Below are positions 3 to 63,723 of a stretch of DNA of 64,000 nt, in pieces. How positions within the stretch are numbered: position 1 is the first letter of the stretch; every line of letters begins with the position of its first letter. Both the position numbers and the translations under genes were made by a program. Location of the stretch: sequence record MK817115.1; one strand, written 5' to 3'. The notes below the pieces were generated by a model. That model was given only the letters and a program-made list of their open reading frames with translations. It had not been told where the DNA came from and did no database searches.

Positions 3-2021
3 CTACCACTGAAGGTAGGAACTTCATCTGACCCTAATTCAGCAGTTAACGTAAAATATCTTGAAGATAACCCTAATGCATTATTTGGTGTTGTACCCCC
101 TACCGATGATGTAGGAAAGAACAATAATACGTATTTTCAAATTGATGAAGATGGTATTGTTGATATTTTTGCAAAAAGTAATGGTACATGGGTAAAATCA
201 TTATACATTAATAAAAAAGTTCTATCCAGTAAAAATGGTGGCGATTTCATCGGACTTATTACTGGAGGTACAGTTCAACAGGCCCAGTTTTATATAACAC
301 CAGAAGAATTTGGTGCTAAAGGTGATGGCGAAACTGATGACACTGCTGCTGTAAATTTATGTGCTGCTTATGCTAAAGAAAATAAAATCCAAATTCAGGC
401 TGGTGGTAATTACCGTATCAAAACTGCAATATACCTGGAAGATGTAACTTGGTTTGGGGGAACTATTACTGGTAATGGTGGTACTATGGTATCCGTTATT
501 AATTCCCAAATACAATTTGCAACACTTACTGGATGTTATTTAAAATTCTTCGGTGGCGATGGTAAGTTTTATTTTAATAAATTTATAAACATCACAAGTA
601 CTGCTGCATTTTTAATGCAAGGTATGACACAACCAGGAACAATAGATTTTTGCTTTAATGAAATGACCCAATGTAAGTATGGTGTTCTTCAACAAGGTAC
701 TGGTGAGAAAATGAAGGTTGGTAGATATTCATATAACCACATACATGATATATATGGTGATGCAATTGAACTAAACGTAATTAACTCACATTATCCTGAT
801 GGTTTTGTGATTGAAGGAAACGTAATTGAAAACGTTGATGGTTCTAACGCTCCAATCCCACTTTCAAACTGGGGCATTGGTATTGGCGTTGCTGGTTCTG
901 GTCCTTATGGTTTAGATGCACCAGATACACAATATGTCAGAAACTTTGTTATTAAAAATAACAGACTATATAATGTTAGACAATGTATCCACGTTGAATT
1001 AGGAATGGACTTTAAAATACTTAATAATGAAGTTTATCCATCATCTTTAGTTTCTGTTGGTACTGGATTAACCACTGCTGGTGTTATAACTTATGGTTCG
1101 AAAGAATTCATTATTGATGGGTTGACTGGTCATTTGCTTAATGATCCTTCTATCACAAATAGAATGGTTTCAATAAACTGGGGTGTAACTTCTGGTCGTT
1201 TTGCTGGACCACCTAGAAACTTTAAAATTTCTAATCTCTATATTCCAGAGTCTTCTATACTTGTTTATACTTCCGGTTCTGATAATTGGTTAAATAATAC
1301 AGAATTGAGCAATATCACCTGTTCTAAAATCCTTTGGCGTGGTTTGCCATCATCATCTAAATTTAGTGATATTAGAACTAAAGAATTAGATGTAATTGGT
1401 CAACACCTCTCTACCGAAGGCGAAGGTGGTGGTATCTATACTCGCTCTAAATATACTTATACTAATTGGACTAACTGTGTTGTTCAAGATGATTGTAATG
1501 TTTCAAAATATAGTTTTTCTAAAATGTATGTAGACAGAATAGACCAATCATCTAATAACTTTAAAGTTACAACTGCAATCGATGGTACAGGACACCGTGG
1601 CCCAGTACTGATACCTGTAGTTGAGCAATATTATATTCCATACGATACTTTTCCTGGGGGACGCTATTTCTCTGAAGGCACGATTATTCATAAACAATCG
1701 GGTGGAAAATATATTGTAACTGTTGGTGGTTCTTTTTTCGGAAAATATGACACAATTAGACAAACGGTAGCAGGACAAACATACATAGAAGCATTGGGTG
1801 TGTCATGGGGTGAAAACCAATATGCAAAAGCTGCTGGTACTGAGATCATTATATCCGGTGCTGGTGAAAATGGTGGTGATTTGAGAACGTATATAACTCG
1901 TGCAGTGTATGTTGTAAACAACGTATATAGAATTGATATTGCAGATCCTATCATAACAGCAACTGCCGCTGGTGCAGCATTAAAAGCTGCCCAACCCGTA
2001 ACTTACATAACCCTACCATAA
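3..2021 (+). CDS. Tailspike, colanic-acid depolymerase-like (WcaM-related beta-helix); 5' end lies outside the window
   Basis: The frame of ORF 486..2021 is open back to position 3. It contains the pectate-lyase-3-type start motif PEEFGAKGDGETDDTAA, and NWGIGIGVAG...VRNFVIKN...RQCIHVELG closely resembles WcaM and phage colanidases. Confidence 0.8.
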   Translation, partial: LPLKVGTSSDPNSAVNVKYLEDNPNALFGVVPPTDDVGKNNNTYFQIDEDGIVDIFAKSNGTWVKSLYINKKVLSSKNGGDFIGLITGGTVQQAQFYITPEEFGAKGDGETDDTAAVNLCAAYAKENKIQIQAGGNYRIKTAIYLEDVTWFGGTITGNGGTMVSVINSQIQFATLTGCYLKFFGGDGKFYFNKFINITSTAAFLMQGMTQPGTIDFCFNEMTQCKYGVLQQGTGEKMKVGRYSYNHIHDIYGDAIELNVINSHYPDGFVIEGNVIENVDGSNAPIPLSNWGIGIGVAGSGPYGLDAPDTQYVRNFVIKNNRLYNVRQCIHVELGMDFKILNNEVYPSSLVSVGTGLTTAGVITYGSKEFIIDGLTGHLLNDPSITNRMVSINWGVTSGRFAGPPRNFKISNLYIPESSILVYTSGSDNWLNNTELSNITCSKILWRGLPSSSKFSDIRTKELDVIGQHLSTEGEGGGIYTRSKYTYTNWTNCVVQDDCNVSKYSFSKMYVDRIDQSSNNFKVTTAIDGTGHRGPVLIPVVEQYYIPYDTFPGGRYFSEGTIIHKQSGGKYIVTVGGSFFGKYDTIRQTVAGQTYIEALGVSWGENQYAKAAGTEIIISGAGENGGDLRTYITRAVYVVNNVYRIDIADPIITATAAGAALKAAQPVTYITLP

Positions 2022-2037
2022 AGGAGATTATATTAAA

Positions 2038-2934
2038 ATGGCAGTTTTTTCTAATTTAGAAGGAACCATGAAGAAGTCCTTCATTCTTGGGAAGAATGGT
2101 GCACAGATTACCACAAATGGTAGTGTTGTGCAAATTCAAAACTACTCAGGAACACAACTTCTTCCAATTTCAGCAGGTGAACCAACTGCAAACACACACT
2201 TGGTTACATTAGGATATTTAAACGCACACAGTGGTGGTGGTAGTTCTGGTATCTTACGTGGAACAACAGCACCATCCGATTCGATCGGTCTAGATGGTGA
2301 CGTTTACTTTTTGGTTGATAGTACTAATGTTCTTCAAATTTATATTAAAGATCTTGGTATTTGGAAACCATTTAAAGGTAGCTCACCTGGGACTGATAGC
2401 TCATATGTAACTACTGAAATAGTTCCTGTTTCTGCATTTACATTAGTGCCAGATACTACTGATCATTATACTTACACACTACCAGAATCAGTTCATGGTA
2501 GAGGTTCTGATATTATGATCCAACTACAAGGTGACCCAGGTAATGTTGCATTGGAATCAGTATTCCAAACCACAGTAACAGTTAGTGGTATTGGGGATAT
2601 AACAATTGATGTGATTGGTCAAATCACAGATTATGCAAGTGTTAAAGTAAACATTATAGGAGCAACAACAATGACAGTACCTTATAGTAAATTGGTAAAC
2701 CAAGCAGATTGGGTTTCTAGTGATGGTGATTTTACAATCACTATTCCTGCATCTGAACACAATCAAACACCAGATAATTTGTATATTTCAATTTATGCAA
2801 ATAAAACACCTGGGAGTGTTTCGTCATCTCCATTTGAATTGGTAGTGACTGATACACAAATTAGTAGTACTGGTGATGTAATCTTCACTTCTGATATTTC
2901 TTTCAGTGGTAAGATTGTCATCTCTGGTAAGTAA
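2038..2934 (+). CDS. Tail fibre/tailspike-associated structural protein sharing an N-terminal anchor module with the upstream tailspike
   Basis: 298 aa with an AGGAG RBS. LLPISAGEPTANTHLVTLGYL and GTTAPSDSIGLDGDVYF..IW resemble LPLKVGTSSDPNSAVNVKYL and GVVPPTDDVGKNNNTYF..TW of the upstream gene. Confidence 0.6.
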   Translation: MAVFSNLEGTMKKSFILGKNGAQITTNGSVVQIQNYSGTQLLPISAGEPTANTHLVTLGYLNAHSGGGSSGILRGTTAPSDSIGLDGDVYFLVDSTNVLQIYIKDLGIWKPFKGSSPGTDSSYVTTEIVPVSAFTLVPDTTDHYTYTLPESVHGRGSDIMIQLQGDPGNVALESVFQTTVTVSGIGDITIDVIGQITDYASVKVNIIGATTMTVPYSKLVNQADWVSSDGDFTITIPASEHNQTPDNLYISIYANKTPGSVSSSPFELVVTDTQISSTGDVIFTSDISFSGKIVISGK

Positions 2935-2941
2935 AAAAATT

Positions 2942-2973
2942 AACCAGACTTGTTCTAAATAAGTCTGGTTTTT
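2942..2973 (+). terminator. Rho-independent terminator
   Basis: AACCAGACTT-N9-AAGTCTGGTT hairpin followed by a T run. Confidence 0.75.
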
Positions 2974-3071
2974 ATTATATTTGCTTTTGTCAAATAACAT
3001 ATTAATTGTTGGATAACAGCATAATAAAACTAAATATATACATATTAACAAGGTTATAATGGAGGGTATAA

Positions 3072-6000
3072 ATGTACTCAATAAAAACTGACTTAGATAT
3101 TACTGGTGCTGGTACGGTTGGTAAGGATCTTTTAGTCAAAGGAAATGCTGTTTTCAACAATAACCTAACTGTAAATGGTACTGTAACTTTTGCAAATGCA
3201 ACTTTTACTGCCATTGAATCATCAACTGCCAACATTACATCTACTTTAGATGTAGGTGGCAAAGCAACACTTTCTGGTGGTCTTGGTGTTGAGGGTAATA
3301 CTACAATCGGTAGTGCAGTTGTTGGGTCTGATACAGCAACAATTAATTCAAACGCTACCTTTAACGGTACTGTATCAGTTGGTTCTGATTTTACACAAAC
3401 TGCTGGTACAACCACTCTACAAGCAACTAAAGTTAAAAACTTAGAAGTTGCTGAAACAACAGCATTTAAAGGTAATATTACTGCTGATGTTGGGACTACT
3501 GCTGCATTTGATAAAATTACTGCTAATACCGCAGAAATTACTAATGTAAGTACAACAGATATTAGTAGTACTGGTACTGCTACATTTAACGATGTGACAA
3601 TTAGTGGTACACTTGGTGGTGAGTTTAATCTATCTGACTTAAATGCAGTAACATTGAACGTTACTGGTGCATCTAACCAACAAGGTGCAGTAACTTTCGG
3701 TGCTAACGTAACTGGTATTAACAGTACTGCTACTTTTAAAGACATTCGTATTGGTTCTAACTCTGAATCACAAACCTTCAGATTAAGCTTCCCTTACACT
3801 GCTCCTGGTAAACGCCCAACTGTTATTCTACAAAACGAAATTCAGTCCGAGCTAATGTCACCTGCAAACTTGACAGTATTGACCTCTGCTTCTTTTGGTA
3901 ATGCGTCATTATCTTCTTATGGTATTACTGGTAATGGTCTAAACAAATTAGATTATCTAACAGTTTCTGGTAACAATACACAATCACCAGACACACCACT
4001 ATTAGAAGTTCAAAAAGGAAAAACTAAAGTTGCTGACTTTGAAGTAACCGGAACTGCAACTATTCCAAATATCGAAAGTACTGGTACTGCTAATTTTAAT
4101 AACATTAATGTTTCTGGTCTTCTTGGTGGAACGTTCCAACTAGACGATATTAATGCAGTATCTTTGAACGTTACTGGTGTAACTTCATTAGTTGGTGGTG
4201 TTACTCTTGGTTCTAATATTACTGGTTATAACAGTACTGCATCCTTTAAAGCTATCAGCTTAGGTCAAAATAGTCAAGATGCGGCAGTGAAACTAGGTTT
4301 TGGATATACTGCACCAGGTCAACGCCCAACAGTTATTCTACCTAACGAAGTTCAATCAGAAGTCGTTTCTCCTTCTACATTGAACGTTCTTAAAACAGCA
4401 ACTTTCGGTAACGCTTCTCTTTCCACTTATGGTATTACTGGTAACGGTCTAAACAAACTAGATTACCTAACTATTACTGGTAACGAAACACAAGCTCCAG
4501 GTACACCATTCCTACAAGTTGGTGGTAAAGCAATTCTTAATGATGTTGAATTTACTGGAACAGTAACTGGACTAACTGTTGATGTTAGTGGGCAGGATCT
4601 AACACCTAATTCTGTTGTCGCGGCAGCAAATATTAAAGGTGCAACACTTGAAAGTACTGGTAACACTACCGTGGGTGCTAAACTAACTGTTACTGGTGAT
4701 ATTGCTGGTACAACTGCAACTCTTTCTGGTGCATTATCCGCTGGTTCAGTAAGTTCTGGTTCTATTACTGGTACAACTTCTGTATCTGCACCAACAATTA
4801 GTGCATCTACTGAAGTAACGGCCCCTACTATCACTGCGAGTGGAACTGTAAGTGGGCAAACAATTAACGGTACTAATATTAGTGCAACAACTCTGACTGC
4901 ACCAACTATTAGTGGTAATACTAACTTTACAGAAAATGTTGATATTACTGGTAGCTTAACTGTTGGTTCTCTAGACTTGAGCACTACCGATATTAATGCT
5001 AAATCAATCACTACTACTGCTGGTGCAACTATTGGTGGTGATTTAGTAGTTCAAGGCTCTTTTGATTTATCAGCAGCCGACCTTAATGTTAAATCATTAA
5101 CTACTTCTGGTATTGTTAAAAGTAATGATCTTGTTAATGCTAACGTACTTCCAGTACTTAATAGTACTACCATAACGGCAACTACTGTTAATGCTGATGA
5201 TATAACTGTTACCGGATCTGCTAATTTGGGTACAATTTACTCAAGCTCATCTGTTCTAGTTGGGTCAACTTTAACTGTAACTGGTGAAACTACAACTGCA
5301 TCGTTGGTTACCCCAACCATTTCAAATGCAAGTGGTGTCACTATTTCCAATAATACAAATGTAACTGGTGACCTAACTGTTACTGGTGCAGTTATTCCAG
5401 GCTCTATCGATCTAGCAACAACTGATGTTAATGCTAAATCCATTACTACTACTGCTGGTGCAACTATTGGTGGTAACCTAACTGTTAATGGTACAGTAGA
5501 TCTTACTACGGCTGATGTTACTGTCAAATCTTTAACTAGTACTGGTGCAATTGTTAGTAATGAATCCACAATTAGTAGTGTTCTACCTAAACTTCAAAGT
5601 ACTGATGCAACTATTGCAACCCTTGGTTCAACAACTGCAAATATTACTAATTTGAATGTTACTGGTGCATCTACCGTAGCTGACGTAACTTCTTCAGGTA
5701 AAGTTAAAGCAGTTTCTGTAGAAACCCCAACAATTAGTAACGTTGATGGTGTATCTATTTCCAATAATACATCTATTACTGGTGACCTAACAGTTTCTGG
5801 TACAGTAACACCAGGTGCAATTGATTTGAGCACAACTGATGTAAGTGCAAAATCCATTACTACTACCGCTGGAGCAAATATTGGTGGAGATCTTGTTGTT
5901 TCTGGTACAGTTGATTTAAGTGGTGCTGATGTATCTGTTAAATCTCTAACAAGTACTGGTATTATTACAGTTAGTAGTGCAGAAGGTATCAACGTTCTAC

Positions 6001-8597
6001 CTAAAGTTCAAAGTACTGAAGTTACAGTGTCTGCTCTAAATGCAACAAATGCAGTAGTTTCTGGTGATGTTTCAGCAGCAACAGCTTCAATCTCAGGTGC
6101 AATTACTGGTGGGTCAGCAACACTATCTGGTGTTGGAACTGCTCTAAATGTAACTAATAACGCAACTGTTGGTGGTGTACTTACTGTTGGTTCTATTACT
6201 TCAGCGGCAGAAAATGTATCCATTACTAAAAATACCGCGATTACTGGTAATTTAGCAGTATCTGGAACACTAACTGCGGGTGTTATTGATCTTAGCACAA
6301 CTGATGTGTCTGTGAAGACATTAACTTCTCTAGGTGATGCAACCGTTCAAGGTAACTTAACTGTTGATGGTACTATTAACCTAAGTTCTGCAAACATCGT
6401 CGGTGTAACACTAGAAAGTACTGGCTCCACTACCGTAGGTACTGATTTGATACTAACTACTGGTAACATTACAGGTAGTCCATCTATTTCTGGTAACTTA
6501 GGTGTAACTGGCACTACAACTTTAACTGGTGCAACAACAGTTTCAAATACATTGAATACTGCTGGTAAACTAACAGTTAATGCTGGTGGAATTCAGGTTG
6601 TTGCTGGTGGTATACAAGTTGATTCTGGAACTATTACTGCTTCTAGTGCTAATATTTCTGGTAGCTCAACACTTAATAGTGCTACTGTAACCACTACACT
6701 AGGTGTTACTGGTGCAGCAAGTATGAATGGTGGTTTAACTGCTTCTACATTGGATGTAACAGGTGATAGTACAGTACAAAAACTAACTGTTAAGGGTGTA
6801 TTTGTTCCTGAAGGTGGTTTGGACTTATCCGGTGCTGATCTTAGTGTGAATAGCGTAACTGCGGCAACCACATTAAGTGTTACTGGTGCTAGTACTCTAA
6901 CTGGTGGTGTTTCCACTTCAACTGTTACTGCATCCGGTAAGGTAACCGCACAAGAACTAAGTACTGGTACATTGGATGTAACCACAAATGGAACTGTTGG
7001 TGGAACTTTAGGTGTAACTGGTAAAGCAACTGTTGGATCACTAGATTCAGGTGCAATCTCTGCAACATCTGGTACATTTAGTACTACACTAGATGTGACT
7101 GGTGCAGCAACCTTTGGTAATAATGTTAACATTACTGGTACATTAACCCCAGGTGCATTGGATTTAGCTAGTACTGATGTAGTTGCTAACAGTCTTTCTG
7201 TAGCTACAACTCTACATTCAGATGGCAACGCAACAATTGGTGGCACATTAGGCGTAACTGGTGCAGTATCTGCTCCATCAATCGCTCTTAATGGTGAAGG
7301 TGCTGCGTTAGCAGTTACTAATAACGCAACAATTGGTGGTACATTAGGTGTAACTGGTGCTACAACTTTAGGTTCTCTAACAACCTCTGGTGCAGTTAAA
7401 ACTGGTGCTGATGTTATTATCGGTACTAAAATTGGCGATCAACCAGAGACAGTTCAGATTTTCCCTAATACTTACATTGCTGGCTCCTTGCGTGTAGATG
7501 GTGGTATCAACGCTGATATTGACGTTAGTGGTCAAACAATTGAACCTTATGCAGTTGTTGCGGCGGACACTATTAGTGCAGCGGGTAATATTACTTCTGG
7601 TGCAGAGTTGATTTCCAAATCAGCAACTATTGGTGATGTTGGTTCACAAAACAACAACTTAACAATCAATGGTAACGTAGTTAACAACGGTAACTTTACA
7701 GTAACTGGTCTACTTAACGCAACACTAAACCAAGCAAACTCTGACGTGGCTGTTAAATCATTAACTGCAACCAACAGTGTTGCTGCTGGTACTAGTATTA
7801 CCGCAGGTACAAGTATTACTGCAACTGGTCTACTAAAAGGGAACACCCTTGAAGTAACTACTACTGGTTCATTTGGTGGTGCAGTAACAATGTCAAGTGG
7901 TGCTAACATTACTGGAACCGTTGGAATTACTTCTGGTAACCTAACTGTTGGTGGTGATATTTCTGCAACAGGTACTGCAACCCTAGCAGCAACTTCAGTA
8001 ACTACCATTACTACTTCTGGTGCAGCAACACTTGCTAGTGCATCTGTTACTGGAGCAGCAACAATCGGTGGTACTTTAACTGTTACTGGTTTAATGACTG
8101 CAAATGGTAGTGTTGTTTTAGGTGACGCTGCTGCTGATACATTAACTGTCAATGCAACATCTTCTTTCAAAGAAAATGCAGTATTTGATAAAGATGTAAC
8201 TGTAACTGGTCAATTAACAACTACTAATGCTGACCTAACTACTACAACAGTAACTACTAAAAAATATGATGTTATTCCTAATCAAGTAACTTCTTCTGTT
8301 ATCGCACCAACTGGTACTTGGACCCCAGACGGTACTAGCAACGTATACTTTATCACTCTAGATCAAGATACCACTCTAGCACCAATCACTGGTCTAATCG
8401 GTGGTGGTAAAGCATCTTCAGTATACATTTATGTGAAACAAGATGCAACAGGTAATAGAAACTTTACTACTGATGGTACTTATGCGGTTGTTGATGGCAC
8501 ACTGAACAAAACTGCAAACTCTGTAACTATCTACCAAGTCATTTATGACGGTGTGAGTCCAGTAACAGATATGTTTATTGCACAACGTACTGCTTAA
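3072..8597 (+). CDS. Very long repetitive tail fibre / virion fibre protein (1841 aa)
   Basis: GGAGG RBS. Thr/Gly/Ser/Val/Ala-rich with internal 170-aa and ~140-aa repeats. The C-terminal domain (ITLDQDTT...VKQDATGNR) is typical of phage fibre tips, and a DUF4376 chaperone gene follows. Confidence 0.7.
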   Translation: MYSIKTDLDITGAGTVGKDLLVKGNAVFNNNLTVNGTVTFANATFTAIESSTANITSTLDVGGKATLSGGLGVEGNTTIGSAVVGSDTATINSNATFNGTVSVGSDFTQTAGTTTLQATKVKNLEVAETTAFKGNITADVGTTAAFDKITANTAEITNVSTTDISSTGTATFNDVTISGTLGGEFNLSDLNAVTLNVTGASNQQGAVTFGANVTGINSTATFKDIRIGSNSESQTFRLSFPYTAPGKRPTVILQNEIQSELMSPANLTVLTSASFGNASLSSYGITGNGLNKLDYLTVSGNNTQSPDTPLLEVQKGKTKVADFEVTGTATIPNIESTGTANFNNINVSGLLGGTFQLDDINAVSLNVTGVTSLVGGVTLGSNITGYNSTASFKAISLGQNSQDAAVKLGFGYTAPGQRPTVILPNEVQSEVVSPSTLNVLKTATFGNASLSTYGITGNGLNKLDYLTITGNETQAPGTPFLQVGGKAILNDVEFTGTVTGLTVDVSGQDLTPNSVVAAANIKGATLESTGNTTVGAKLTVTGDIAGTTATLSGALSAGSVSSGSITGTTSVSAPTISASTEVTAPTITASGTVSGQTINGTNISATTLTAPTISGNTNFTENVDITGSLTVGSLDLSTTDINAKSITTTAGATIGGDLVVQGSFDLSAADLNVKSLTTSGIVKSNDLVNANVLPVLNSTTITATTVNADDITVTGSANLGTIYSSSSVLVGSTLTVTGETTTASLVTPTISNASGVTISNNTNVTGDLTVTGAVIPGSIDLATTDVNAKSITTTAGATIGGNLTVNGTVDLTTADVTVKSLTSTGAIVSNESTISSVLPKLQSTDATIATLGSTTANITNLNVTGASTVADVTSSGKVKAVSVETPTISNVDGVSISNNTSITGDLTVSGTVTPGAIDLSTTDVSAKSITTTAGANIGGDLVVSGTVDLSGADVSVKSLTSTGIITVSSAEGINVLPKVQSTEVTVSALNATNAVVSGDVSAATASISGAITGGSATLSGVGTALNVTNNATVGGVLTVGSITSAAENVSITKNTAITGNLAVSGTLTAGVIDLSTTDVSVKTLTSLGDATVQGNLTVDGTINLSSANIVGVTLESTGSTTVGTDLILTTGNITGSPSISGNLGVTGTTTLTGATTVSNTLNTAGKLTVNAGGIQVVAGGIQVDSGTITASSANISGSSTLNSATVTTTLGVTGAASMNGGLTASTLDVTGDSTVQKLTVKGVFVPEGGLDLSGADLSVNSVTAATTLSVTGASTLTGGVSTSTVTASGKVTAQELSTGTLDVTTNGTVGGTLGVTGKATVGSLDSGAISATSGTFSTTLDVTGAATFGNNVNITGTLTPGALDLASTDVVANSLSVATTLHSDGNATIGGTLGVTGAVSAPSIALNGEGAALAVTNNATIGGTLGVTGATTLGSLTTSGAVKTGADVIIGTKIGDQPETVQIFPNTYIAGSLRVDGGINADIDVSGQTIEPYAVVAADTISAAGNITSGAELISKSATIGDVGSQNNNLTINGNVVNNGNFTVTGLLNATLNQANSDVAVKSLTATNSVAAGTSITAGTSITATGLLKGNTLEVTTTGSFGGAVTMSSGANITGTVGITSGNLTVGGDISATGTATLAATSVTTITTSGAATLASASVTGAATIGGTLTVTGLMTANGSVVLGDAAADTLTVNATSSFKENAVFDKDVTVTGQLTTTNADLTTTTVTTKKYDVIPNQVTSSVIAPTGTWTPDGTSNVYFITLDQDTTLAPITGLIGGGKASSVYIYVKQDATGNRNFTTDGTYAVVDGTLNKTANSVTIYQVIYDGVSPVTDMFIAQRTA
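3600..4530 (+). repeat. Tandem 510-nt (170-aa) internal duplication in the fibre gene
   Basis: ACAGTACTGC at 3721 and 4231; YTAPG(K/Q)RPTVIL and YGITGNGLNKLDYLT each occur twice. Confidence 0.9.
4930..6400 (+). repeat. Four degenerate ~138-145-aa repeats in the fibre gene
   Basis: Recurrent DLSTTD(I/V)xAKSITTTAGAxIGGxLxVxGxxDL..A unit near 4980, 5410, 5825 and 6290. Confidence 0.8.
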
Positions 8598-8661: not shown

Positions 8662-9441
8662 ATGTTCACATATGTGAAAGGAAATTCAAAAGAAAATTAT
8701 GAATTGGGAAACATTATTTCCAATCCAATTGGTGTAAAAGGACTTAAAGAACGTCCTGGTGCAACACCAGAAGATCCACAAACCTATCGTTATCTTTATA
8801 GTGATATTAGAACTCTTTATGGTATTTCAAGTAAAGATGGTTCCCCAGTAGAACCTAATGATGCTGTTAGAAAAGAAGAAGGTTTTTGGTGGTTAGTGTA
8901 TAAAAATGTTGGAAATGTTAATGCTATTGAACAACCGTTGGAGTTTATTAAATTAAAAGATGAAAATCAACCTATTGTTGAATTTTTAGAAGACGCTACC
9001 GAAGAATATAAAGCACTAACTGTTCTTAAAACATATCATTATATTGATATGCCAATAGCAGATGTTAAAGTTGATTTAAAAGCAAGAACTATATCAGAAC
9101 GTACAAATCGTATGAATTCTGGTTATATGTTCAATGGTCATCGTTACAGTACTGATATGTCTGGTCGTCAAATGCTTCTTAATTACTATACACAAGTCAC
9201 TTCAGGTTCTGAAAGTGTTTCTATTTTTCTTGATGACGCAATTGTAAAATTATCTGCTACTGAAATGACACAACTATACACTGGAGCCTTTGCTATGATT
9301 GAGCAATTGTTTACAGAATGTGACAATCAGTGTGCAGCAATTGATGCAGTTGATGATTTAGATCCTGATGCAATTTATAAGGCACAACAAGCTGCAACTT
9401 GGGTATATGAAGGTGTTGATATTCCTGAACGTATACGTTAA
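8662..9441 (+). CDS. Tail fibre assembly protein, DUF4376-like C-terminal domain
   Basis: GAGGT RBS. RMNSGYMFNGHRYSTDMSGRQ...IVKLSATEM pattern of DUF4376; lies directly after the fibre gene. Confidence 0.6.
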   Translation: MFTYVKGNSKENYELGNIISNPIGVKGLKERPGATPEDPQTYRYLYSDIRTLYGISSKDGSPVEPNDAVRKEEGFWWLVYKNVGNVNAIEQPLEFIKLKDENQPIVEFLEDATEEYKALTVLKTYHYIDMPIADVKVDLKARTISERTNRMNSGYMFNGHRYSTDMSGRQMLLNYYTQVTSGSESVSIFLDDAIVKLSATEMTQLYTGAFAMIEQLFTECDNQCAAIDAVDDLDPDAIYKAQQAATWVYEGVDIPERIR

Positions 9442-9525: not shown

Positions 9526-11490
9526 ATGAGTATAAATCGAATTAGAGGTGATGGTGGTGTAATTATTGATAGTAAATCTTTTTTAGAGTTACCGAAAGCA
9601 CCATCAAAAGAAACCGCTGATGTAATAAGATCAGGGATGATTAGATACAATAAGGAATGGAAATCATTTGAAGGTGTTCTGGATTTTGAAGATGGTACTA
9701 TGGCATATCGCCGCTTTGCAAACTTAGATGCAAATGGTAAACTTCTTACTTCCCAATTACCAGATTCAGTAACTAGTGGTTTACAGTTTGTTGGTACATA
9801 CAATCCTATCCCAGATGATATTGATCCACCTTTAGCACAAACACCACTACCAGCACCAGCAGCATCACTAAATGGTGATTATTATGTTGTTCGTGGTATT
9901 ATGGATGCAGCACAAGCACACTTTGAAGCAAATAACCCACAAACAAGTCCGGTTACATTTACACCTACGAACCCAACTGGTCAAGGTAATTGGATTGAAA
10001 TTTTATATTATGTTGACTCCAATCCAAATATATCTGGTGCTAAACTTGTAACATACGCTTTTGCAAGAATTATTACTGCATCTATTCCTAGTACTGGTCA
10101 TGATGGTCTTAAAAATTTAGCAACAGATGCTGACTTAACCAAACCATTTGCTTCAGGCGTTCCAATGAACCAAACCGCACTATCAGATGGTGATTGGATC
10201 ATTATAACTGAAGATAAAAACATACGTCTACGCCAGTCAAGAACAAGCATTTCTGCTGCTTCTGTATTATATGACAATACAGTAATGATTGCAAACCATC
10301 GTCAATTTAGAACAAACGCAGGAACCGTACAAACATCCATAGATAACGTTGTGATTGAATGTTTACGTAGAACTGGTGATTCCATGTATAATGATGGAAC
10401 AAGCGGCTCAGGGCGTTTTGGTGTGGTCTATGGTAGTGCAGCAGCACCAGCATTGACATTTAATAACAATCCATTTGATCCAACCAATAACCCAGGTAAT
10501 GATCCTGCAAAATGGTCAGACGCTAATACTGGTATATTTCATCCAGCCGATGACGCAATTGGGTTCAGTACTGCTGGAACTGAACGTATTAGAATTAATA
10601 ATTCAACATTAACATTATACCAAACAACTTCAACCCCAGCATCAACCCCAGTACTAAGATTTGATAATGCAACCAATACTAATGTTGGACTAAGTGCTAG
10701 TAGTAATATTATTTCATTTAGTTCAATGAATAAAGTACAAGTTGAATTTAAAAATGGTGAAAGTGCGTTTCATGGTAATATTGTGGTTGATGGTACAAGT
10801 ACATTGACTGGTGATACATCAGCTAGTAATATCACTGCTAGTGGTAATTTGAACATTCAAGGTAATACTACATTAGGCGATGCTGCATCTGATACAATTA
10901 CAGTTAATGGAGTTAGTACGTTTACAGCAAACACTAATTTCAATGGAACAACTAATAAATTTAAAAATATAAATCTATTAGCTAATGGTATAATTACATT
11001 AGAAAGTACTACTAATCAAAGTACAATCCAATTAGTTAGTTCTGATTTAAAACTATCAATGGGTAATTATGCTGATGTAAGTATCTATGATAATGGAACT
11101 ATAAGAACACGTTTTAATAGATATGGTATCCAATTACCAGTACTAGCTACTATTGATAACTCTGTTGGCGTTGATGGTATGATTGCATACTCCAATACCG
11201 AGCGTACTTCAATGCAAAAAGTTCAAGGTCAATGGGTTCCAATTGGTTCAGGTTCAGTGAGAACCGATGCTTTTACAATTTCATCTTGGGTATTAAGTGG
11301 TAACTACTACACCCTTACTGTAACAGCCTCAAACATCGTCACAGCAGAGATACAGGAACAGGTTAGTCCTGGTGTCTATACTCGTGTTGAGGTCGATAGC
11401 GTTACGTTTAACGGCACTAACGTAGTGTTTAGTATACCTTCAACTCCTGATGTACGTTTCGACGGAAGAACATTGGTAACAATTAGATAA
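9526..11490 (+). CDS. Virion structural protein (tail fibre/baseplate-associated), 654 aa
   Basis: GAGG RBS with TAAATA upstream. GMIRYN..FEG and GDAASDTITVN fibre-type motifs; the latter is shared with the 1841-aa protein. Confidence 0.55.
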   Translation: MSINRIRGDGGVIIDSKSFLELPKAPSKETADVIRSGMIRYNKEWKSFEGVLDFEDGTMAYRRFANLDANGKLLTSQLPDSVTSGLQFVGTYNPIPDDIDPPLAQTPLPAPAASLNGDYYVVRGIMDAAQAHFEANNPQTSPVTFTPTNPTGQGNWIEILYYVDSNPNISGAKLVTYAFARIITASIPSTGHDGLKNLATDADLTKPFASGVPMNQTALSDGDWIIITEDKNIRLRQSRTSISAASVLYDNTVMIANHRQFRTNAGTVQTSIDNVVIECLRRTGDSMYNDGTSGSGRFGVVYGSAAAPALTFNNNPFDPTNNPGNDPAKWSDANTGIFHPADDAIGFSTAGTERIRINNSTLTLYQTTSTPASTPVLRFDNATNTNVGLSASSNIISFSSMNKVQVEFKNGESAFHGNIVVDGTSTLTGDTSASNITASGNLNIQGNTTLGDAASDTITVNGVSTFTANTNFNGTTNKFKNINLLANGIITLESTTNQSTIQLVSSDLKLSMGNYADVSIYDNGTIRTRFNRYGIQLPVLATIDNSVGVDGMIAYSNTERTSMQKVQGQWVPIGSGSVRTDAFTISSWVLSGNYYTLTVTASNIVTAEIQEQVSPGVYTRVEVDSVTFNGTNVVFSIPSTPDVRFDGRTLVTIR

Positions 11491-12454: not shown

Positions 12455-13047
12455 TATTCTTCCTTGAAAAATGTAATAAAATGTTCCATATGTTTTTCGG
12501 TGGCATTGCGTGAACCAATACCAGTCCAGTTACCATGTGGTGCTGGAACGACGAATGTTTGTGTGAACTCTTTCAGTACTGTATCGAAATAAAATACTGA
12601 ACGTGAATTCATATCATAACAATAAATTTCAGGATTTTCAACTGAATCCATATACATCTGTACTGCCCATGCAGTACCACCACTTACCTTAGTTGGTGAT
12701 GTGATATTTGCAATACAATATATTCTTTCTGTATTAAGTATCTGATAACTATTCCTTGCAAGTAAGTTGTAAACATAAGAACCAGGCTTTGGTACTTTTC
12801 GCTGCAACGAGTAACATGCAATGTTTAGTTGATTTAATATAGAAATATCAGATAGAATATTGGATGGTATTTCTAATATAGTACTTTCATCTACACTATG
12901 CTCATGACCTTTGAATGAAAAATTAATAACTTCAAATCCATTATTTTTTGCATAGATAGAAAAAAGGCGGTCAGCACCTGCTGCCCCGCCACTAAAACAT
13001 ACATTAGATAAACCTTTAATTGCTTCATCTAATTCATTCTTTTTCAT
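12454..13047 (-). CDS. Standalone SLOG-superfamily (DprA/LOG/YpsA-like) nucleotide-binding protein
   Basis: SGGAAGAD glycine loop near the N-terminus, later SGGTAWAV and TGIGSR motifs. Confidence 0.65.
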   Translation of the reverse strand: MKKNELDEAIKGLSNVCFSGGAAGADRLFSIYAKNNGFEVINFSFKGHEHSVDESTILEIPSNILSDISILNQLNIACYSLQRKVPKPGSYVYNLLARNSYQILNTERIYCIANITSPTKVSGGTAWAVQMYMDSVENPEIYCYDMNSRSVFYFDTVLKEFTQTFVVPAPHGNWTGIGSRNATEKHMEHFITFFKEE

Positions 13048-21629: not shown

Positions 21630-23737
<2,108 letters not shown>

Positions 23738-34151: not shown

Positions 34152-34152
34152 A

Positions 34153-34275: not shown

Positions 34276-34286
34276 AATGCCTCCAA

Positions 34287-34709
34287 TTAAATTAATCTAT
34301 CACGTAGACGGTCGTAATATTTTTCGTGTATAGCTAGTATACACTGATATGCAGAATAGTCAATGCCAAATGTATCATCAATGAACATGTACTGATCAAG
34401 TGTTTCTGGTCCATTATCATCAACTGGTAATGTCCCTTCTTTTTTTGATAGGGTGTGCCACATCAACTCACTTTCAATATGGTGAGTTGCGTATGTCAAT
34501 TCAATCTTACTTTTTCTTAGTAAAATTAACAATTCATCATTGTCGTCGAGTGCATTACGAAATTTAATACGAACAGTACCCTGAAAATTATTAGTGTACA
34601 TAACACGATGTTGATTATATGTAACTAAACCACGTCTTTCAGTACTGATTTCATGTTCAGCAAAGTACTTTAACGTTTCATTAAATTTTGGAATTTTAGT
34701 AACGTCCAA
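34287..34709 (-). CDS. Hypothetical protein, expanded paralog family
   Basis: C-terminal ETLDQYMFIDDTFGIDYSAYQ motif shared with neighbours. Confidence 0.6.
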   Translation of the reverse strand: MDVTKIPKFNETLKYFAEHEISTERRGLVTYNQHRVMYTNNFQGTVRIKFRNALDDNDELLILLRKSKIELTYATHHIESELMWHTLSKKEGTLPVDDNGPETLDQYMFIDDTFGIDYSAYQCILAIHEKYYDRLRDRLI

Positions 34710-35106
34710 TCACATAATCCTCATAAAGTTCGTATACCCTCATTATACTCTGATATGTTTCAAAGTCAATGCCAAAGGTATCCTCAATGAACTGATATTG
34801 CATAAACTCTTCCTCTGTAGCAGCAATAGGAAGAGTCCCGTTTCGTTGTTCTGTTGATTGAACATCCTCAATATACATCAACACTATACTTTCATCCAGA
34901 TTTATATCTATCATAAAAACATCTTCACTATAAAATAAGTTATATGTACGGATGAAGAGATTTCCTGTTCTATCATAACTTGACACGTGTGTTTCATAAT
35001 ACATTTTATCTAAACTAAAGAACAAACCTGTACTATCTGGCTTTTTAGTATTTTTTAATTTAATTTCGATAGCATCAATCATAGGTTTAATATCAAACTT
35101 TTTCAT
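34696..35106 (-). CDS. Hypothetical protein, expanded paralog family
   Basis: C-terminal EEEFMQYQFIEDTFGIDFETYQ. Confidence 0.6.
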   Translation of the reverse strand: MKKFDIKPMIDAIEIKLKNTKKPDSTGLFFSLDKMYYETHVSSYDRTGNLFIRTYNLFYSEDVFMIDINLDESIVLMYIEDVQSTEQRNGTLPIAATEEEFMQYQFIEDTFGIDFETYQSIMRVYELYEDYVIGRY

Positions 35107-41138: not shown

Positions 41139-41527
41139 TCTACAATCTCCATAGAATTATCATCATCATAATCATCACTGGTGTACTTAGTTTTTACCTC
41201 AATACCATTCTCATGTAGGTATGTGATAAAACCATTACCATAAACGAATTGATTATAATATGTATTTTCTTCTACATGTGCATCATAATCATCTTCATAA
41301 TATGTGGGTATTGTAACATCATGACCTACACTTTGCAAGTACTGGAACAATTCTTTCAGTACTACTTCGATATCACCTTCTTCTGTGCCATAACAATATG
41401 CAGGTTCACCGTGAGTGAATTTGAATCCTTTACAGGAAACTGTATAAATGTCACTCATGTTCATACCACAATCATCACATTCATGTATAGAACAATGCTG
41501 GTGGAATTTAATCTTTTTGATTTGCAT
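41135..41527 (-). CDS. Acidic hypothetical protein with CxxC
   Basis: 130 aa; HECDDCG motif. Confidence 0.5.
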   Translation of the reverse strand: MQIKKIKFHQHCSIHECDDCGMNMSDIYTVSCKGFKFTHGEPAYCYGTEEGDIEVVLKELFQYLQSVGHDVTIPTYYEDDYDAHVEENTYYNQFVYGNGFITYLHENGIEVKTKYTSDDYDDDNSMEIVD

Positions 41528-42539: not shown

Positions 42540-42980
42540 TTATTGTAAAACTTTAAGTTTGTAAAGTGTTCCTTCAACAAAACTCATAATATCTTCTAAT
42601 GTGTTTACACTGCCGTAATCACCTGATTCTTCAAGCATATCATGAATTGCTCTACATTGCTCAACATATTCTTCAAGAATTGGTACACAATCTTCAATTG
42701 GTGTAAAACGATAACTATTACCAGTTCCAACTTGTAAAGCACCACGATTATTCATGATACCTTCAACAAATGCGTCTACATATTCTGGTAATTCTTTATA
42801 TAGTTCATCTAATTGTAAATGCTTTGTATAAAAATGACATTGTAAGTGCCAGTTATGTGCAGCAGAACTTAAAAACAAACTATTTTCAATAAAAGTTAAT
42901 AGTACTTCATCATACGAATTATCTTCTTCAGTACTTCCGATAAAGTCCATTACGTGTCGTAAATCATTAATATCTTCCAT
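42540..42980 (-). CDS. Dps/ferritin-like four-helix protein
   Basis: AHNWHLQC...KHLQLDELY...VDAFVE matches the Dps ferroxidase signature. Confidence 0.75.
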   Translation of the reverse strand: MEDINDLRHVMDFIGSTEEDNSYDEVLLTFIENSLFLSSAAHNWHLQCHFYTKHLQLDELYKELPEYVDAFVEGIMNNRGALQVGTGNSYRFTPIEDCVPILEEYVEQCRAIHDMLEESGDYGSVNTLEDIMSFVEGTLYKLKVLQ

Positions 42981-53578: not shown

Positions 53579-56308
53579 TTATTTCCAACGTGTACCTGGA
53601 CCTGATGGTACACCAGTACTGGCAGGTATCGCTGAACCACGTTTCGTTGTACTTGGACGATATGTCAAAAAACGAGTTACTTTTTCTGTATCAATTGAAG
53701 TTATTCCTGAAGTTCCAGTAACTATCTTACCAATGTAAGTGCTAGTTAAAGATTCATCAATTGTTTCAGTACTAATAACATATGACGCTTTCTTAGTATT
53801 CCTGTTCATTTGTATATACAAATAGAACGTAGTATTAGCTGGGTTACTTTTTACAGTACTTAAATCAACACTTTGTATAGGTAGTCTGTCGAAAATTCCA
53901 CCTAAAAACACCGGAACTTCACGTGTAAAGTACACTGAGAATCCTTGTGCAACGTCTTGTGATACTACCACAATCTTTTCTTTAACGCTACCATTTCCAC
54001 TAATTAAACCATCCATTTCAGCAGATGTTGTACCAAAAACGCTGAATACAGATTTGGTTTGATAGTCAGAATCTTGAAAATTGTAATATCCAAAACCAAC
54101 ACCAGGAATAACACCATGTTGATATGCTGCACCAAGTTGGATGTAACTAGATGATAAAAAACGATTTGATGTTATGACACCATCTACTGTTTTAGCTATC
54201 ATCATCTTAAATTGTGCATTACCTGGTTGTGAAAATTGATGAACAGCATCAACACCAATGTAACCAAATCCTGAATATTTTGCAACTGTTAGACCAGTAC
54301 AACGTTTCATATATGCTTCAGTAATAATTCCTGTAACAGAACTAAGTGTCTCATATCTAGTACTCACCAATGTAGCTGAAGTTATGTTAGTTCCAGATAA
54401 TACAACATCAACTTCGGCATAGATTGCATAACCTTGGTTATTGTTAAGATTATATGCTGAAACTACTGCGATGGATTTAGAAAAAGTATTATCAGGTACA
54501 TAATATAATACAATTTGTCCAGATAGTGTGCCAACAATGCCAGAGTTTCCTATATTAGCAAAAATATCTTGTTTTAATGATTCTAATACCGTTGGTTCTA
54601 TTGTATATGTTTCATCAAATTCTAAAGTATCTGGGTTTAATAATCCACCACTTGTTTTATATACACCTTCAATGAATGATGTTCCATAGCATCTAACACT
54701 ACCATCGGTATCAACAAGAGAAATCATAGCAGTGTATGTAAAATCATCGCCTATTTGTTTACGATTAGATTGTGGTGCAAAACCATTTAATGTAGTATTA
54801 TTTTGAACTGAGTTATATTGATATGTTGGTTGTGAACCTATTTCAGAAAAAACAGTATTATTATAATTATATGTTACATCATCATACGTACCAGAACATG
54901 CTAATAATATTTTTCTATTATCGATGAAACGTACACCTAAAAGGTTTGCACCAACAGCACTACCAAAAACTGGTAAAACGTTTGCATTTATAACGTTACT
55001 TGCGGTTCTAGTACTGGCAACCCATGAATCAAACGGTGTACCACTAACCTTATATCGTTGTAGACCATAAAATTCAGTTGAACTCCATCTAAATTTAGAT
55101 GCAAATACCAAACCATCTTTAGTTTGACATAAACCACCTGCGTTTCCTAATACACCAGCAGCAGTTGTCCCTGTGAAGTTGACCATATTAATTTCAAATG
55201 GGTTAGAAACTTGAAATCCATTATTATATGAAACAGTTGCAGGTGCACGAGCACTACCATCTAGTGACATAGATTTTGAGTTTATATTATAAACAAAACT
55301 TATTCCAGTACCATAAACTGTTGAAATATACAAAGGTGTAACCATTCGATGTGTTGGATATAAAGTTACACGTATTTTTGATAAATCAGTACTAACGTTG
55401 GCTTGAATGTTAAAGTCTGTATAGTCTGAAAATTCTACACGTGATACTGGTGATGTAACTTCGAATAATGAATCCGAGCTAGTACCAACACTATATAATT
55501 TATCGAACACTCTTATGTTATTAGATGCAGAATAACTTGTGTTTCGAACAGTTTGACCTGATAACCCAGTAACTTTTGTTAATGATGCCATTGAGCTTGC
55601 TTTCACATCACTTAGCTCTACTGTATAAATTGAAAGTGCTAATCCTAAATTAGAAACACTTTTATCTTTACACCAAATATAAACCTTTGTCCCAACAATA
55701 TGTGTATATATTGGCATATCATTACCAAAAGAAGTACTTGGCACTTTAGCATGAATATGTGATATTTCGTTAAATGTGCCATTGGTTATAGTAAAAATAT
55801 AATTATCTTCAGTACTTAAACATCCAAGCATCTCATAACCATTAGAGCCAATAAAATACTTAATATTTTCAGTACTACTCATAATTGAAGGTTTATACAT
55901 TGAATTGGTTGAAATAACACTTTCTTGTGAAATCATAGTTATATTTCGGAGTTCTCGTATAAATGAATAATAAAAACCTTTAGTACTACCATTGGTTCCG
56001 CTACGCAGAACAACGGCGGTTCCATCATCTTCAATAATTGTTGGCTGAACTACTTGGTCACTTGACATAGGTGTAGCACCTTCATACGACCCACTTACGT
56101 TTAATGGTAAGTAATCCATTTCTCCTACACGTGATATAGGCAACATATCTAAAATACTTTGAACTTCTGAACGCTTATATATTGGATATTGAACAATTCC
56201 AGTATTGGCATTCGGTGAGGTTCCATTAAAAGTACGCATAGCGTACCTTTGTCCAATTGCCAAGTTCCCAAGGATCTCGGCACTTCCTATAATTCGTTTT
56301 GATGACAT
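53579..56308 (-). CDS. Tail fibre/receptor-binding-like structural protein (~909 aa), paralog of 56924..59620
   Basis: AGGA RBS before MSSKRIIG (56308); EDDGTAVVLRSGTNGS, VSQDVAQGF..YFT and C-terminal G.P..W shared. Confidence 0.7.
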   Translation of the reverse strand: MSSKRIIGSAEILGNLAIGQRYAMRTFNGTSPNANTGIVQYPIYKRSEVQSILDMLPISRVGEMDYLPLNVSGSYEGATPMSSDQVVQPTIIEDDGTAVVLRSGTNGSTKGFYYSFIRELRNITMISQESVISTNSMYKPSIMSSTENIKYFIGSNGYEMLGCLSTEDNYIFTITNGTFNEISHIHAKVPSTSFGNDMPIYTHIVGTKVYIWCKDKSVSNLGLALSIYTVELSDVKASSMASLTKVTGLSGQTVRNTSYSASNNIRVFDKLYSVGTSSDSLFEVTSPVSRVEFSDYTDFNIQANVSTDLSKIRVTLYPTHRMVTPLYISTVYGTGISFVYNINSKSMSLDGSARAPATVSYNNGFQVSNPFEINMVNFTGTTAAGVLGNAGGLCQTKDGLVFASKFRWSSTEFYGLQRYKVSGTPFDSWVASTRTASNVINANVLPVFGSAVGANLLGVRFIDNRKILLACSGTYDDVTYNYNNTVFSEIGSQPTYQYNSVQNNTTLNGFAPQSNRKQIGDDFTYTAMISLVDTDGSVRCYGTSFIEGVYKTSGGLLNPDTLEFDETYTIEPTVLESLKQDIFANIGNSGIVGTLSGQIVLYYVPDNTFSKSIAVVSAYNLNNNQGYAIYAEVDVVLSGTNITSATLVSTRYETLSSVTGIITEAYMKRCTGLTVAKYSGFGYIGVDAVHQFSQPGNAQFKMMIAKTVDGVITSNRFLSSSYIQLGAAYQHGVIPGVGFGYYNFQDSDYQTKSVFSVFGTTSAEMDGLISGNGSVKEKIVVVSQDVAQGFSVYFTREVPVFLGGIFDRLPIQSVDLSTVKSNPANTTFYLYIQMNRNTKKASYVISTETIDESLTSTYIGKIVTGTSGITSIDTEKVTRFLTYRPSTTKRGSAIPASTGVPSGPGTRWK

Positions 56309-56324
56309 CTTTCTTTTCCTTAAT

Positions 56325-56912
56325 TTACCAACCAATTGTACCAGTTTCTGATGGTTTTCCAGTACTGACTGGGAATGAAGAACCTTTTTGTGTAACACTA
56401 GGTCTATATGTACTAAATCTGGATACTTTATTAATGTTTATATTTGTAATACCACTTGTACCAACGGTCAGTGTTCCAATAAACATTATAATTTCAGATT
56501 CTTGTATTTGTGTTGGTGATATTTTATAAATTGGTTCACCGAGAACTAACGTTGCATATACGTATTGTGTTTGTGTTCCAGATGAAACAGTTGAAGCAAA
56601 AATAGAAACTGCTGGAAATTTATAAAGATAACCACCAATAAATGATGGTATCTGTCTATTAAATGTAAGACTATAGCCTGATGAAGTAATATTTAGACTA
56701 GCGTCATCATACAATTCTCCGTATTGTGTAAGTGGTAATCCATTGACAATAAAGTTAACTTCATCTTTGGTAATAGAGGGGAATGTACATTCCCCATTTG
56801 AATTTGTTGGGTAATAAGTCATATTATTACCTAATACACCAAGACCAGTACTTTTACCCTGAACTGTAACTTGTTGCATTGCCTTAAGGTCTGCTCTTAT
56901 TTTATATGCCAT
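56325..56912 (-). CDS. Short paralog of the flanking tail proteins (195 aa), lacking the central domain
   Basis: LPLTQYG N-module joined directly to the C-module YVYATL...RFSTYRPS...GSSFPVSTG.PS.TG..W. Confidence 0.7.
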   Translation of the reverse strand: MAYKIRADLKAMQQVTVQGKSTGLGVLGNNMTYYPTNSNGECTFPSITKDEVNFIVNGLPLTQYGELYDDASLNITSSGYSLTFNRQIPSFIGGYLYKFPAVSIFASTVSSGTQTQYVYATLVLGEPIYKISPTQIQESEIIMFIGTLTVGTSGITNININKVSRFSTYRPSVTQKGSSFPVSTGKPSETGTIGW

Positions 56913-60471: not shown

Positions 60472-60479
60472 AATTTACC

Positions 60480-62561: not shown

Positions 62562-62733
62562 CTGGACTCCATGTAATAGTCACTGTGAAAGTGCCTTCCT
62601 GAAAACCAAACTCATCTTGTGGGATTTGTTCAGCTAATGGGTTAAATCTTGAATCGAAGGCTTCATGTACGTCTCTTTGAATATCATAGAGACTTTCACC
62701 ATCGTATTCTTTTTTGAAGATTTCATTCTGCAT
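62548..62733 (-). CDS. Small hypothetical protein
   Basis: 61-aa ORF. Confidence 0.5.
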   Translation of the reverse strand: MQNEIFKKEYDGESLYDIQRDVHEAFDSRFNPLAEQIPQDEFGFQEGTFTVTITWSPDETS

Positions 62734-63133
62734 TTAAACGTAACGACCCTCGGATTGTATATGGATAATTATCTAATAGATCGATTAGTCTATTAAATGT
62801 ATGAGTACTGATGAATGGATGTTTCTTAGCTAGTTCAATGCGTTTTTCAAAATCCATTATTGTAATCTCGGTTCTATTGAAACTACCTTTACGTCTGTAC
62901 GTTAGTAAACGCTCTTTATGTCCATCAAGCTGGAAATCAAAATATGTTGTTGCATTATAATCACTATCATCACTGATAGGCTTTGAAAGATCCAGATTAT
63001 ACGTAGTTCCAATCGCAAAAAAGTATCCACCATCTTCCAATGGAATATCTTTGTCGCTTAGATTGAAATCTGTTTCATCACCTAGTATATCAAATATCTT
63101 GATACTTAGTGACATAAATTCATCAGCTAACAT
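62723..63133 (-). CDS. Hypothetical protein
   Basis: 136-aa ORF. Confidence 0.5.
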   Translation of the reverse strand: MLADEFMSLSIKIFDILGDETDFNLSDKDIPLEDGGYFFAIGTTYNLDLSKPISDDSDYNATTYFDFQLDGHKERLLTYRRKGSFNRTEITIMDFEKRIELAKKHPFISTHTFNRLIDLLDNYPYTIRGSLRLNAE

Positions 63134-63144
63134 TTCTTTTTACC

Positions 63145-63363
63145 TTATTTGATAACTCTACAGTAGTACTGAATAATGTAAGGAAATAAAGGATTATTTA
63201 CGTATGTTGCAAAATTAGCTATTGTAACTTTTTTATAGTACGAATTATGAATTGTTATAAGAGTGTGGGGGTCTATTGATTCTCTATTAGAGAGTTCAAC
63301 ATAACGCCCACACTTCATATAAGCCTTACCATAATAATCGTAAATTATCTCGTATTTTTCCAT
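63145..63363 (-). CDS. Small hypothetical protein
   Basis: 72-aa ORF. Confidence 0.45.
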   Translation of the reverse strand: MEKYEIIYDYYGKAYMKCGRYVELSNRESIDPHTLITIHNSYYKKVTIANFATYVNNPLFPYIIQYYCRVIK

Positions 63364-63723
63364 TTATTCAGGATCTTTATTTTTATCAACTGTGTTGTTT
63401 TTATTCAAATCAATTTGCAAAGCCATTGCAGCTTCAGCATTTTCTTCATGTGTGCCATTGAATTTATACCCATTCTTGATGAGATTCACGGTGTAGTACT
63501 TATTATAAAGAAATGCCCATACAACCATTGCAATTGTACCCACAATCCAAAATGACACTGCGTTGAGGATGAAGTAAATTACGAATGCACCGATGAACGT
63601 AATAAAGTCACCACGAAACAATGCAGGGAACGGTCCAAAGAATAATGTTGTCCAAGAAAAACCAAAGAAACCATCTTTGCGTTGTCCTACATTTTCATTT
63701 TTTAAAGAAATTGTTTTAGCCAT
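63364..63723 (-). CDS. Membrane protein, DUF2628-like
   Basis: GGAG RBS before MAKTIS; GFFGFSWTTLFFGPFPALFRGD plus TM helices and NKYYTVNLIKNGY. Confidence 0.6.
   Translation of the reverse strand: MAKTISLKNENVGQRKDGFFGFSWTTLFFGPFPALFRGDFITFIGAFVIYFILNAVSFWIVGTIAMVVWAFLYNKYYTVNLIKNGYKFNGTHEENAEAAMALQIDLNKNNTVDKNKDPE

Follow-up and report, generated by a model that had tools for sequence, protein, structure and literature searches.

The highly iterated palindrome HIP1 is a short sequence found about once per few hundred bases in cyanobacterial genomes. It is present in all coding frames and in non-coding DNA, and it affects both codon and dipeptide usage. HIP1 is shared within clades, single sites turn over, and its mechanism is debated, with selection and a methylation-linked repair drive both proposed. 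Here we describe the palindrome AGTACT in Escherichia phage vB_EcoM_phAPEC6 (phAPEC6), a 352.6-kb Asteriusvirus belonging to the RaK2-like jumbo myoviruses. It is investigated in a stretch of 64,000 nucleotides (the window), which corresponds to bases 186001–250000 of sequence record MK817115.1 with 100% identity, as well as in the genome at large and in related phages. In the RaK2-like clade AGTACT, preferably as CAGTACTG, is highly iterated, and this signature belongs to the DNA itself and is not a by-product of coding.

The hexamer itself has been described in other contexts. Mollivirus sibericum encodes a methyltransferase that has been assigned to AGTACT and has no partner nuclease, and the paper describing it reports no AGTACT excess (PMC7253447). 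The host nucleoid-occlusion protein SlmA recognizes a 12-bp palindromic site with an AGTACT core (PMC3020112). A literature search found no published description of AGTACT enrichment.

The window has a GC content of 34.6% and contains tail-fibre, tail-tube, sheath, neck and nucleotide-metabolism genes along with many hypothetical genes, predominantly on the minus strand. Its gene set was the deposited annotation plus added long intact open reading frames (ORFs), and 90% of the window is coding. AGTACT is present 134 times between positions 597 and 63500 (first copy 597–602, last copy 63495–63500), with a mean spacing of ~480 bp; an initial annotation, made from the sequence alone, had tallied about 129 copies by hand. 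Zero-order base composition predicts 21.6 copies, in line with the ~22 expected from GC in that annotation, and dinucleotide-preserving shuffles of the window gave 19.2 (standard deviation 4.8, maximum 29). The 125 genic sites occupy all three frames, as had been claimed, with 70 read as AGT-ACT, 36 as xxA-GTA-CTx and 19 as xAG-TAC-Txx. The codon readings that had been given for six of them (at 22406, 23152, 34043, 34664, 37236 and 37488) are all correct on the sense, minus, strand. Plus- and minus-strand genes are equal in sites per kb. The remaining nine sites are outside the gene calls, at 12880 (12880–12885), 14060, 20486, 30445, 42063, 43788, 43980, 62449 and 63165, in 6.25 kb of non-coding DNA where composition predicts ~2.

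Is this excess simply the result of the proteins encoded and the codons used? Amino-acid, codon or codon-pair preferences of translation might produce it; amino-acid and codon usage do lift the expectation from 22 to 47, and several abundant hexamers of the window are plain codon-pair effects. When synonymous codons were shuffled within genes, keeping protein and codon usage, AGTACT occurred on average 46.9 times (standard deviation 5.4, maximum 65 in 500 shuffles), and the observed count is 2.9 times this mean (z = 16). In the strictest null third positions were moved only within the same gene, among codons with the same first two bases and the same next base. This keeps all dinucleotides and gave 87.9 copies (standard deviation 5.4, maximum 105 in 1000 shuffles; z = 8.6). 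The excess holds under every null run, as the initial annotation had expected in setting aside Ser-Thr-rich proteins and codon usage as the explanation, and a codon or dicodon artefact is ruled out by the within-gene, the pooled and the dinucleotide-preserving third-position shuffles. In addition, three frames with unrelated dipeptides are affected along with non-coding DNA, the reversed dipeptides are not enriched, the reversed codon pair ACT-AGT is depleted genome-wide (34 vs 73 expected), and among neighbouring words the palindrome alone is affected. An origin in coding preferences is therefore scarcely credible. About half of the raw 6-fold excess does come from amino-acid and codon usage, and of the ~5–6-fold enrichment first proposed it is a 2–3-fold remainder that is specific to the word. 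Since AGTACT itself inflates codon and amino-acid usage, this residual 2–3-fold excess is a conservative estimate.

The excess belongs to the entire word. AGTACT is the strongest outlier among the 2,080 strand-folded hexamers in a codon-shuffle scan of the window (z = 17.3), and CAGTACTG is the strongest 8-mer outlier, with 29 copies vs 4.2–4.3 expected (z = 18.3); the copy at 22405–22412 reads Q-Y-W in the minus-strand head-completion gene. The non-palindromic neighbours GGTACT, AGTACC, AGTACA and TGTACT are present at 0.73–1.24 times expectation. A ratio near 1 under coding-preserving nulls, or equal enrichment of such neighbours, had been named beforehand as evidence against the enrichment; what was found is an excess that remains under those nulls and neighbours that stay near 1. 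After removal of the full sites there is no excess of AGTAC not followed by T, of GTACT, or of GTAC without the outer A and T. The unit is thus the whole hexamer, and the shorter units GTAC and AGTAC are rejected.

Genome-wide analysis covered 349 kb of phAPEC6 in eight separate pieces with 534 ORFs. These contain 912 copies of AGTACT, against 117 expected from composition and ~391 from the codon null. AGT-ACT accounts for 366 (108 expected), which is 52% of all S-T pairs, and the other frame classes are likewise in excess (xxA-GTA-CTx, 224 vs 52; xAG-TAC-Txx, 142 vs 22). The two most over-used dipeptides of the phage are S-T (706 vs 484 expected; reverse T-S 479) and V-L (751 vs 542 expected; reverse L-V 515), with Q-Y ranking fifth, and the leading codon pairs are GTA-CTG (139 vs 20 expected), AGT-ACT, CAG-TAC, AAG-TAC and GAG-TAC. 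The over-used dipeptides are those that AGTACT spells in its frames, which indicates a pressure that acts at the nucleic-acid level and suffices to alter the proteins. Density is lowest in the replication and structural core (11–16 per 10 kb) and highest at 320–349 kb, among small early genes (65–67 per 10 kb).

The bases on either side of the hexamer are also not random. Among the 912 sites C comes before in 48% and G comes after in 43%, with avoidance of a preceding G and a following C. By frame, C at -1 is present in 39%, 41% and 46% of sites, against backgrounds of 12%, 15% and 19%, and the preference for C at -1 and G at +1 holds in each frame, whatever codon position the flank occupies. 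Mirror-image flanks in every frame point to symmetric recognition at the DNA level, since neither a signal in the mRNA nor a codon effect would give them. Judged from these counts, the flank symmetry is what a reader of double-stranded DNA with two-fold symmetry would leave.

This symmetry bears on three other explanations. The initial annotation had listed a Chi-like recombination signal among the possible roles, which is unlikely because a palindrome with symmetric flanks has no polarity. Separately, the Escherichia coli Chi octamer itself is present 27 times in phAPEC6 (19.1 under the codon null, ~1.5 from composition), with five copies on the plus strand of the window and none on the minus strand. 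Could AGUACU instead act in RNA, as an mRNA processing site or a structure-forming element? Most sites are transcribed, as nearly all genes share one strand, and two copies of the palindrome can pair, as in one terminator stem of the Pectobacterium phage CBB that is made of two AGTACT copies. The mirror-symmetric flanks in every frame are, however, unlike a directional single-stranded signal, many sites are upstream of a -10 element and outside the transcript of that promoter, and plus- and minus-strand genes do not differ in site density. A role in RNA is very improbable. Even less can be said for capture of SlmA, in which the phage sites would bind this protein to block cell division. The reported SlmA site has the same central hexamer (PMC3020112), but the pair of G before and C after is present at only 4 of the 912 phage sites and the full 12-mer at none; the opposite flanks effectively refute SlmA as the reader, and we give this explanation almost no credence.

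The region with the highest density (320–349 kb, outside the window) has dense sigma70-like early promoters ahead of tiny genes. AGTACT is found at two preferred offsets in 33 of 56 early-region promoter candidates of phAPEC6, either directly 5' of the -10 element or abutting the -35 element, and often at both, 20–23 bp apart. Pairs with this spacing, which equals two helical turns, are ~3-fold over-represented genome-wide; the window pair at 41338–41363 (20 bp apart) belongs to this class. A second pair, 10 bp apart (5153–5168), is within the long plus-strand tail-fibre-like gene at 3072–8597. No even spacing or periodicity was seen beyond the 20–23 bp promoter pairs, in what was a weak test. 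These features would fit an operator or promoter element, with AGTACT binding a regulator of the early sigma70-type promoters and the intragenic copies being spill-over. Promoter-like windows, however, hold only 74 of the 912 sites (8%), the published RpoD-like promoters of CBB do not have AGTACT at those offsets, and structural and replication genes are equally strongly enriched. Being confined to 8% of sites and not conserved in CBB, a promoter element is rejected as the main cause, and we hold it to be improbable. AGTACT seems to settle wherever it is tolerated. Inside window genes no hexamer is more depleted than the T4-type late-promoter word TAAATA (45 vs 98), and TATAAATA, another such word, is among the most depleted genic 8-mers (1 vs 9.4), which fits avoidance of spurious late promoters.

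Relatives were compared over homologous regions of ~42 kb, for which the tail sheath gene (25702–28365, minus strand), which has several AGTACT sites inside, was the anchor for retrieval. AGTACT ranks first or second of the 2,080 hexamers in UE-S1, BF17, Turkey5, JNE01 and EJP2, and likewise in CBB, RaK2 (Klebsiella), SE_PL (Salmonella) and XaC1 (Xanthomonas). In the Yersinia phage fHe-Yen9-04, for which another region of 40.5 kb was used, it ranks first, with 173 copies (z = 20.6). The excess is thus present in every RaK2-like lineage tested, ten genomes beside phAPEC6, with a copy roughly every 400 bases across the clade. Outside the clade the picture is reversed. The next outgroup, Pseudomonas phage PA5oct, has one copy in 40 kb vs 13.4 expected, and none of its palindromes is more depleted; in 41 kb of the unrelated coliphage ECGD1 there is no copy vs 13.8 expected, and 50 kb sampled from E. 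coli K-12 contained three. With all lineages tested rich in AGTACT and the outgroup depleted, the origin of the trait lies at the base of the RaK2-like clade, in a setting where AGTACT is otherwise avoided. The scarcity in ECGD1, PA5oct and E. coli K-12 suggests, on these counts, that AGTACT-cutting enzymes may matter in these hosts.

The clade has not escaped restriction avoidance in general. CTGCAG and CAGCTG are absent from all members tested and GGTACC is missing from most, from which it follows that ordinary restriction avoidance acts on the clade. The window has no GGTACC, no GCGC (28 expected) and 106 GATC vs 180 expected, and there is avoidance specific to single lineages, with no GATATC in CBB and XaC1 and no AAGCTT in SE_PL. 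The initial annotation was therefore right that phages usually deplete such palindromes, both for the outgroups, which lack AGTACT or nearly so, and for this clade with respect to CTGCAG, CAGCTG and GGTACC.

How stable are the sites? At 71–79% identity in-place retention of AGTACT is 2–4 times that of control hexamers, but each genome has mostly private sites while density is maintained. At shallower depth AGTACT loss is 36%, against a control-hexamer median of 32%, and pooled gains roughly balance losses. Fast turnover with density kept implies that the number of sites matters more than their place. With Turkey5 as outgroup, gains outnumber losses in the phAPEC6 lineage (12 vs 5). In the UE-S1 lineage the reverse holds, with 16 losses vs 2–3 gains; of 97 well-sampled words none has a lower gain/loss ratio there, and the AGTACT density of UE-S1, 1.17 per kb, is about half that of its relatives. 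In the wider parsimony counts of gains and losses control words show a bias. One possibility for the loss in UE-S1 is exposure to a host enzyme cutting AGTACT. Codon-pair odds for AGTACT are 2.7–3.1, and from these the per-site preference is estimated at about 3-fold, with a scaled force of ~1.

Taken together, these results show that a weak, pervasive directional pressure writes AGTACT into any tolerant position, including three reading frames, intergenic DNA, promoter spacers and terminator stems. Three features that mark HIP-type elements were found here: the excess is genome-wide, it occupies all frames and non-coding DNA with an effect on codons and dipeptides, and it is shared by the clade and absent from the outgroups. 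The proposal of selection or a site-directed process like that of HIP1 is thereby strengthened, as the excess survives the nulls and extends across the genome and the clade.

The reading that we tentatively favour, over a functionless drive and at somewhat less than an even chance, is that a clade-specific symmetric reader uses AGTACT as a dense self-mark. The pressure would act through a two-fold-symmetric reader of double-stranded DNA, either a dimeric binding protein or a modification enzyme, which would have originated at the base of the clade. Sites in early promoters probably couple such a reader to early transcription in Asteriusvirus. A more specific version, in which a dedicated phage system reads CAGTACTG on double-stranded DNA and its ~900 copies serve as a genome-wide self-identity mark, is rather unlikely as it stands. 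A mark of this kind could steer protection, compaction or transcription to phage DNA, or could spare phage DNA during attack on host DNA. The role as a self-mark or binding site put forward in the initial annotation is thus retained as the best reading. The sites would act by their number, as a dense mark of ~2.6 per kb in the phage vs ~0.06 per kb in the host, although this contrast rests on a single 50-kb host sample, which is the first of several points that weigh against the self-mark.

The others concern the reader itself and the behaviour of the sites. No reader of AGTACT was identified, with only two DNA methyltransferases recognizable in the 349 kb, both outside the window: gp123c, a C5-cytosine methyltransferase of 286 amino acids, and gp394c, a Dam-family N6-adenine methyltransferase of 173 amino acids. 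The amino-methyltransferase catalytic motif was found in gp394c only among the 534 ORFs. In ECGD1, which has no AGTACT, a homologue of the C5 enzyme is present (51%), and the C5 methyltransferase is rejected as the cause. Homologues of gp394c are present in every lineage of the clade listed and apparently absent from PA5oct-like phages, and gp394c is unrelated to the small methylase of ECGD1; its homologues in Acinetobacter and Staphylococcus phages (42–47% identity), however, come with no AGTACT excess. By its distribution gp394c is the best-fitting candidate among the recognizable enzymes, with nothing tying it to AGTACT. For the orphan methyltransferase anticipated in the initial annotation, which would also be a HIP-type feature if it recognized the palindrome or its core, phAPEC6 has two candidates, neither of whose families tracks AGTACT outside the clade; belonging to one of these families is ruled out as the main cause of the excess. 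Moreover, UE-S1 sheds sites without obvious gene loss, and per-site conservation at shallow depth is not detectably above that of ordinary hexamers. With conservation this ordinary, a functionless drive and a function indifferent to the position of single sites are difficult to tell apart.

The C5 gene of UE-S1 (2250–4130 of the stretch analysed) is interrupted in frame by one intein, which has Hint and LAGLIDADG homing-endonuclease domains, so its split was rejected as a loss of function in this low-density phage. The same two-place match of the C5 gene is seen in TH47, JNE01, ph0011 and A4. JNE01 has the intein-bearing gene with normal AGTACT density, and the intein does not track density. 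As a separate observation, fHe-Yen9-04 has an extra gene (34015–34860 of the stretch analysed) that adjoins a DNA ligase gene and whose annotation is type II DNA modification methyltransferase; at this position phAPEC6 has a different hypothetical gene.

The alternative to be weighed most carefully against a self-mark is a drive without purpose, in which mismatch correction or gene conversion with a sequence-specific bias turns near-matches into AGTACT during the heavy recombination of T4-like genomes, on the model of HIP1 and possibly linked to methylation. Any tolerant position is filled, promoter spacers and terminator stems among them; sites turn over fast and each is lost at an ordinary rate; density peaks in the least constrained early-gene region; and the force is weak and uniform across frames. 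The pressure is also lineage-dependent, as if one enzyme had been gained or lost. All of this is what such a drive would give. However, no one-mismatch variant is clearly depleted, with the deamination product AGTATT/AATACT at 0.85 times, no lower than other words containing AGT or ACT. No Vsr-like or other nuclease domain adjoins gp123c or gp394c, and on these two grounds a Vsr-type repair signature was rejected. Among six near-identical genomes the youngest changes, with 4 losses and 2 gains, do not suffice to distinguish selection from a mutational drive. A drive also leaves unexplained why 900 copies of a site avoided by coliphages should be present in a clade that purges other restriction sites. 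We consider it possible, if on the unlikely side. The data in hand cannot separate a self-mark reader from a functionless drive.

Whichever process is responsible, AGTACT is an exception to a rule. Phages purge restriction-type palindromes, and here a clade of 350-kb phages enriches one while purging others, under a pressure strong enough to reshape the proteome of the clade. The system is a tractable model for the origin and upkeep of iterated palindromes, with small genomes, many sequenced relatives and a sharp phylogenetic boundary, and UE-S1, as a lineage in which the pressure is apparently relaxed, is useful for the same question as posed by HIP1. AGTACT density is a near-diagnostic signature of RaK2-like DNA in metagenomes, and AGTACT abundance predicts how virion DNA behaves towards AGTACT-cutting enzymes. 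A self-identity mark, if true, would be a new kind of viral self/non-self discrimination, written into coding sequence.

Some further features of the window were noted. Several intact long ORFs are without annotation in MK817115.1, at 486–2021, 2038–2934, 8662–9441 and 9526–11490 on the plus strand and at 53579–56398 and 56325–56912 on the minus strand; their homologues in close relatives are colanic-acid-degrading, structural or tail-fibre proteins. A small minus-strand gene at 42540–42980 is labelled in relatives as Dps-like, starvation-inducible DNA-binding or ferritin-like, which is unusual in a phage.

How does AGTACT compare with the systems already described? SlmA sites number only tens per chromosome, against ~900 AGTACT in the phage, and have flanks opposite to those that the phage prefers. 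The two are alike in being AGTACT-core palindromes read by a symmetric dimer on double-stranded DNA, as described for SlmA (PMC3020112) and as would hold for the phage under the reading favoured here. The SlmA site is evidence that a protein of this host can bind a core of this kind. Like AGTACT, uptake signal sequences and Chi are single short words in excess across the genome, with a specific reader in their case and a proposed one here; they are maintained by molecular drive or selection, but are asymmetric, strand-biased words, unlike a palindrome with symmetric flanks. Mollivirus sibericum is also a large DNA virus, though with an amoeba host, and no relative of its enzyme was recognized in phAPEC6, where the only amino-methyltransferase motif is that of gp394c. 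Restriction-site avoidance is relevant since AGTACT is a type II target (the ScaI site), since these genomes do avoid CTGCAG, CAGCTG, GGTACC and GCGC, and since ECGD1 and PA5oct avoid AGTACT; for AGTACT in this clade the sign is opposite, with a 6–8-fold excess (2.9–6-fold in the window) and no depletion. AGTACT differs from HIP1 as an AT-rich word with a 6-bp core, as a restriction-type site avoided by related phages and by the host, in having no cognate methyltransferase matched to it here, and in being carried by a virus clade and not a cellular lineage. In its density, its placement in all frames and in non-coding DNA, its effect on codons and dipeptides, its sharing within a clade and the turnover of its sites, AGTACT is like HIP1.

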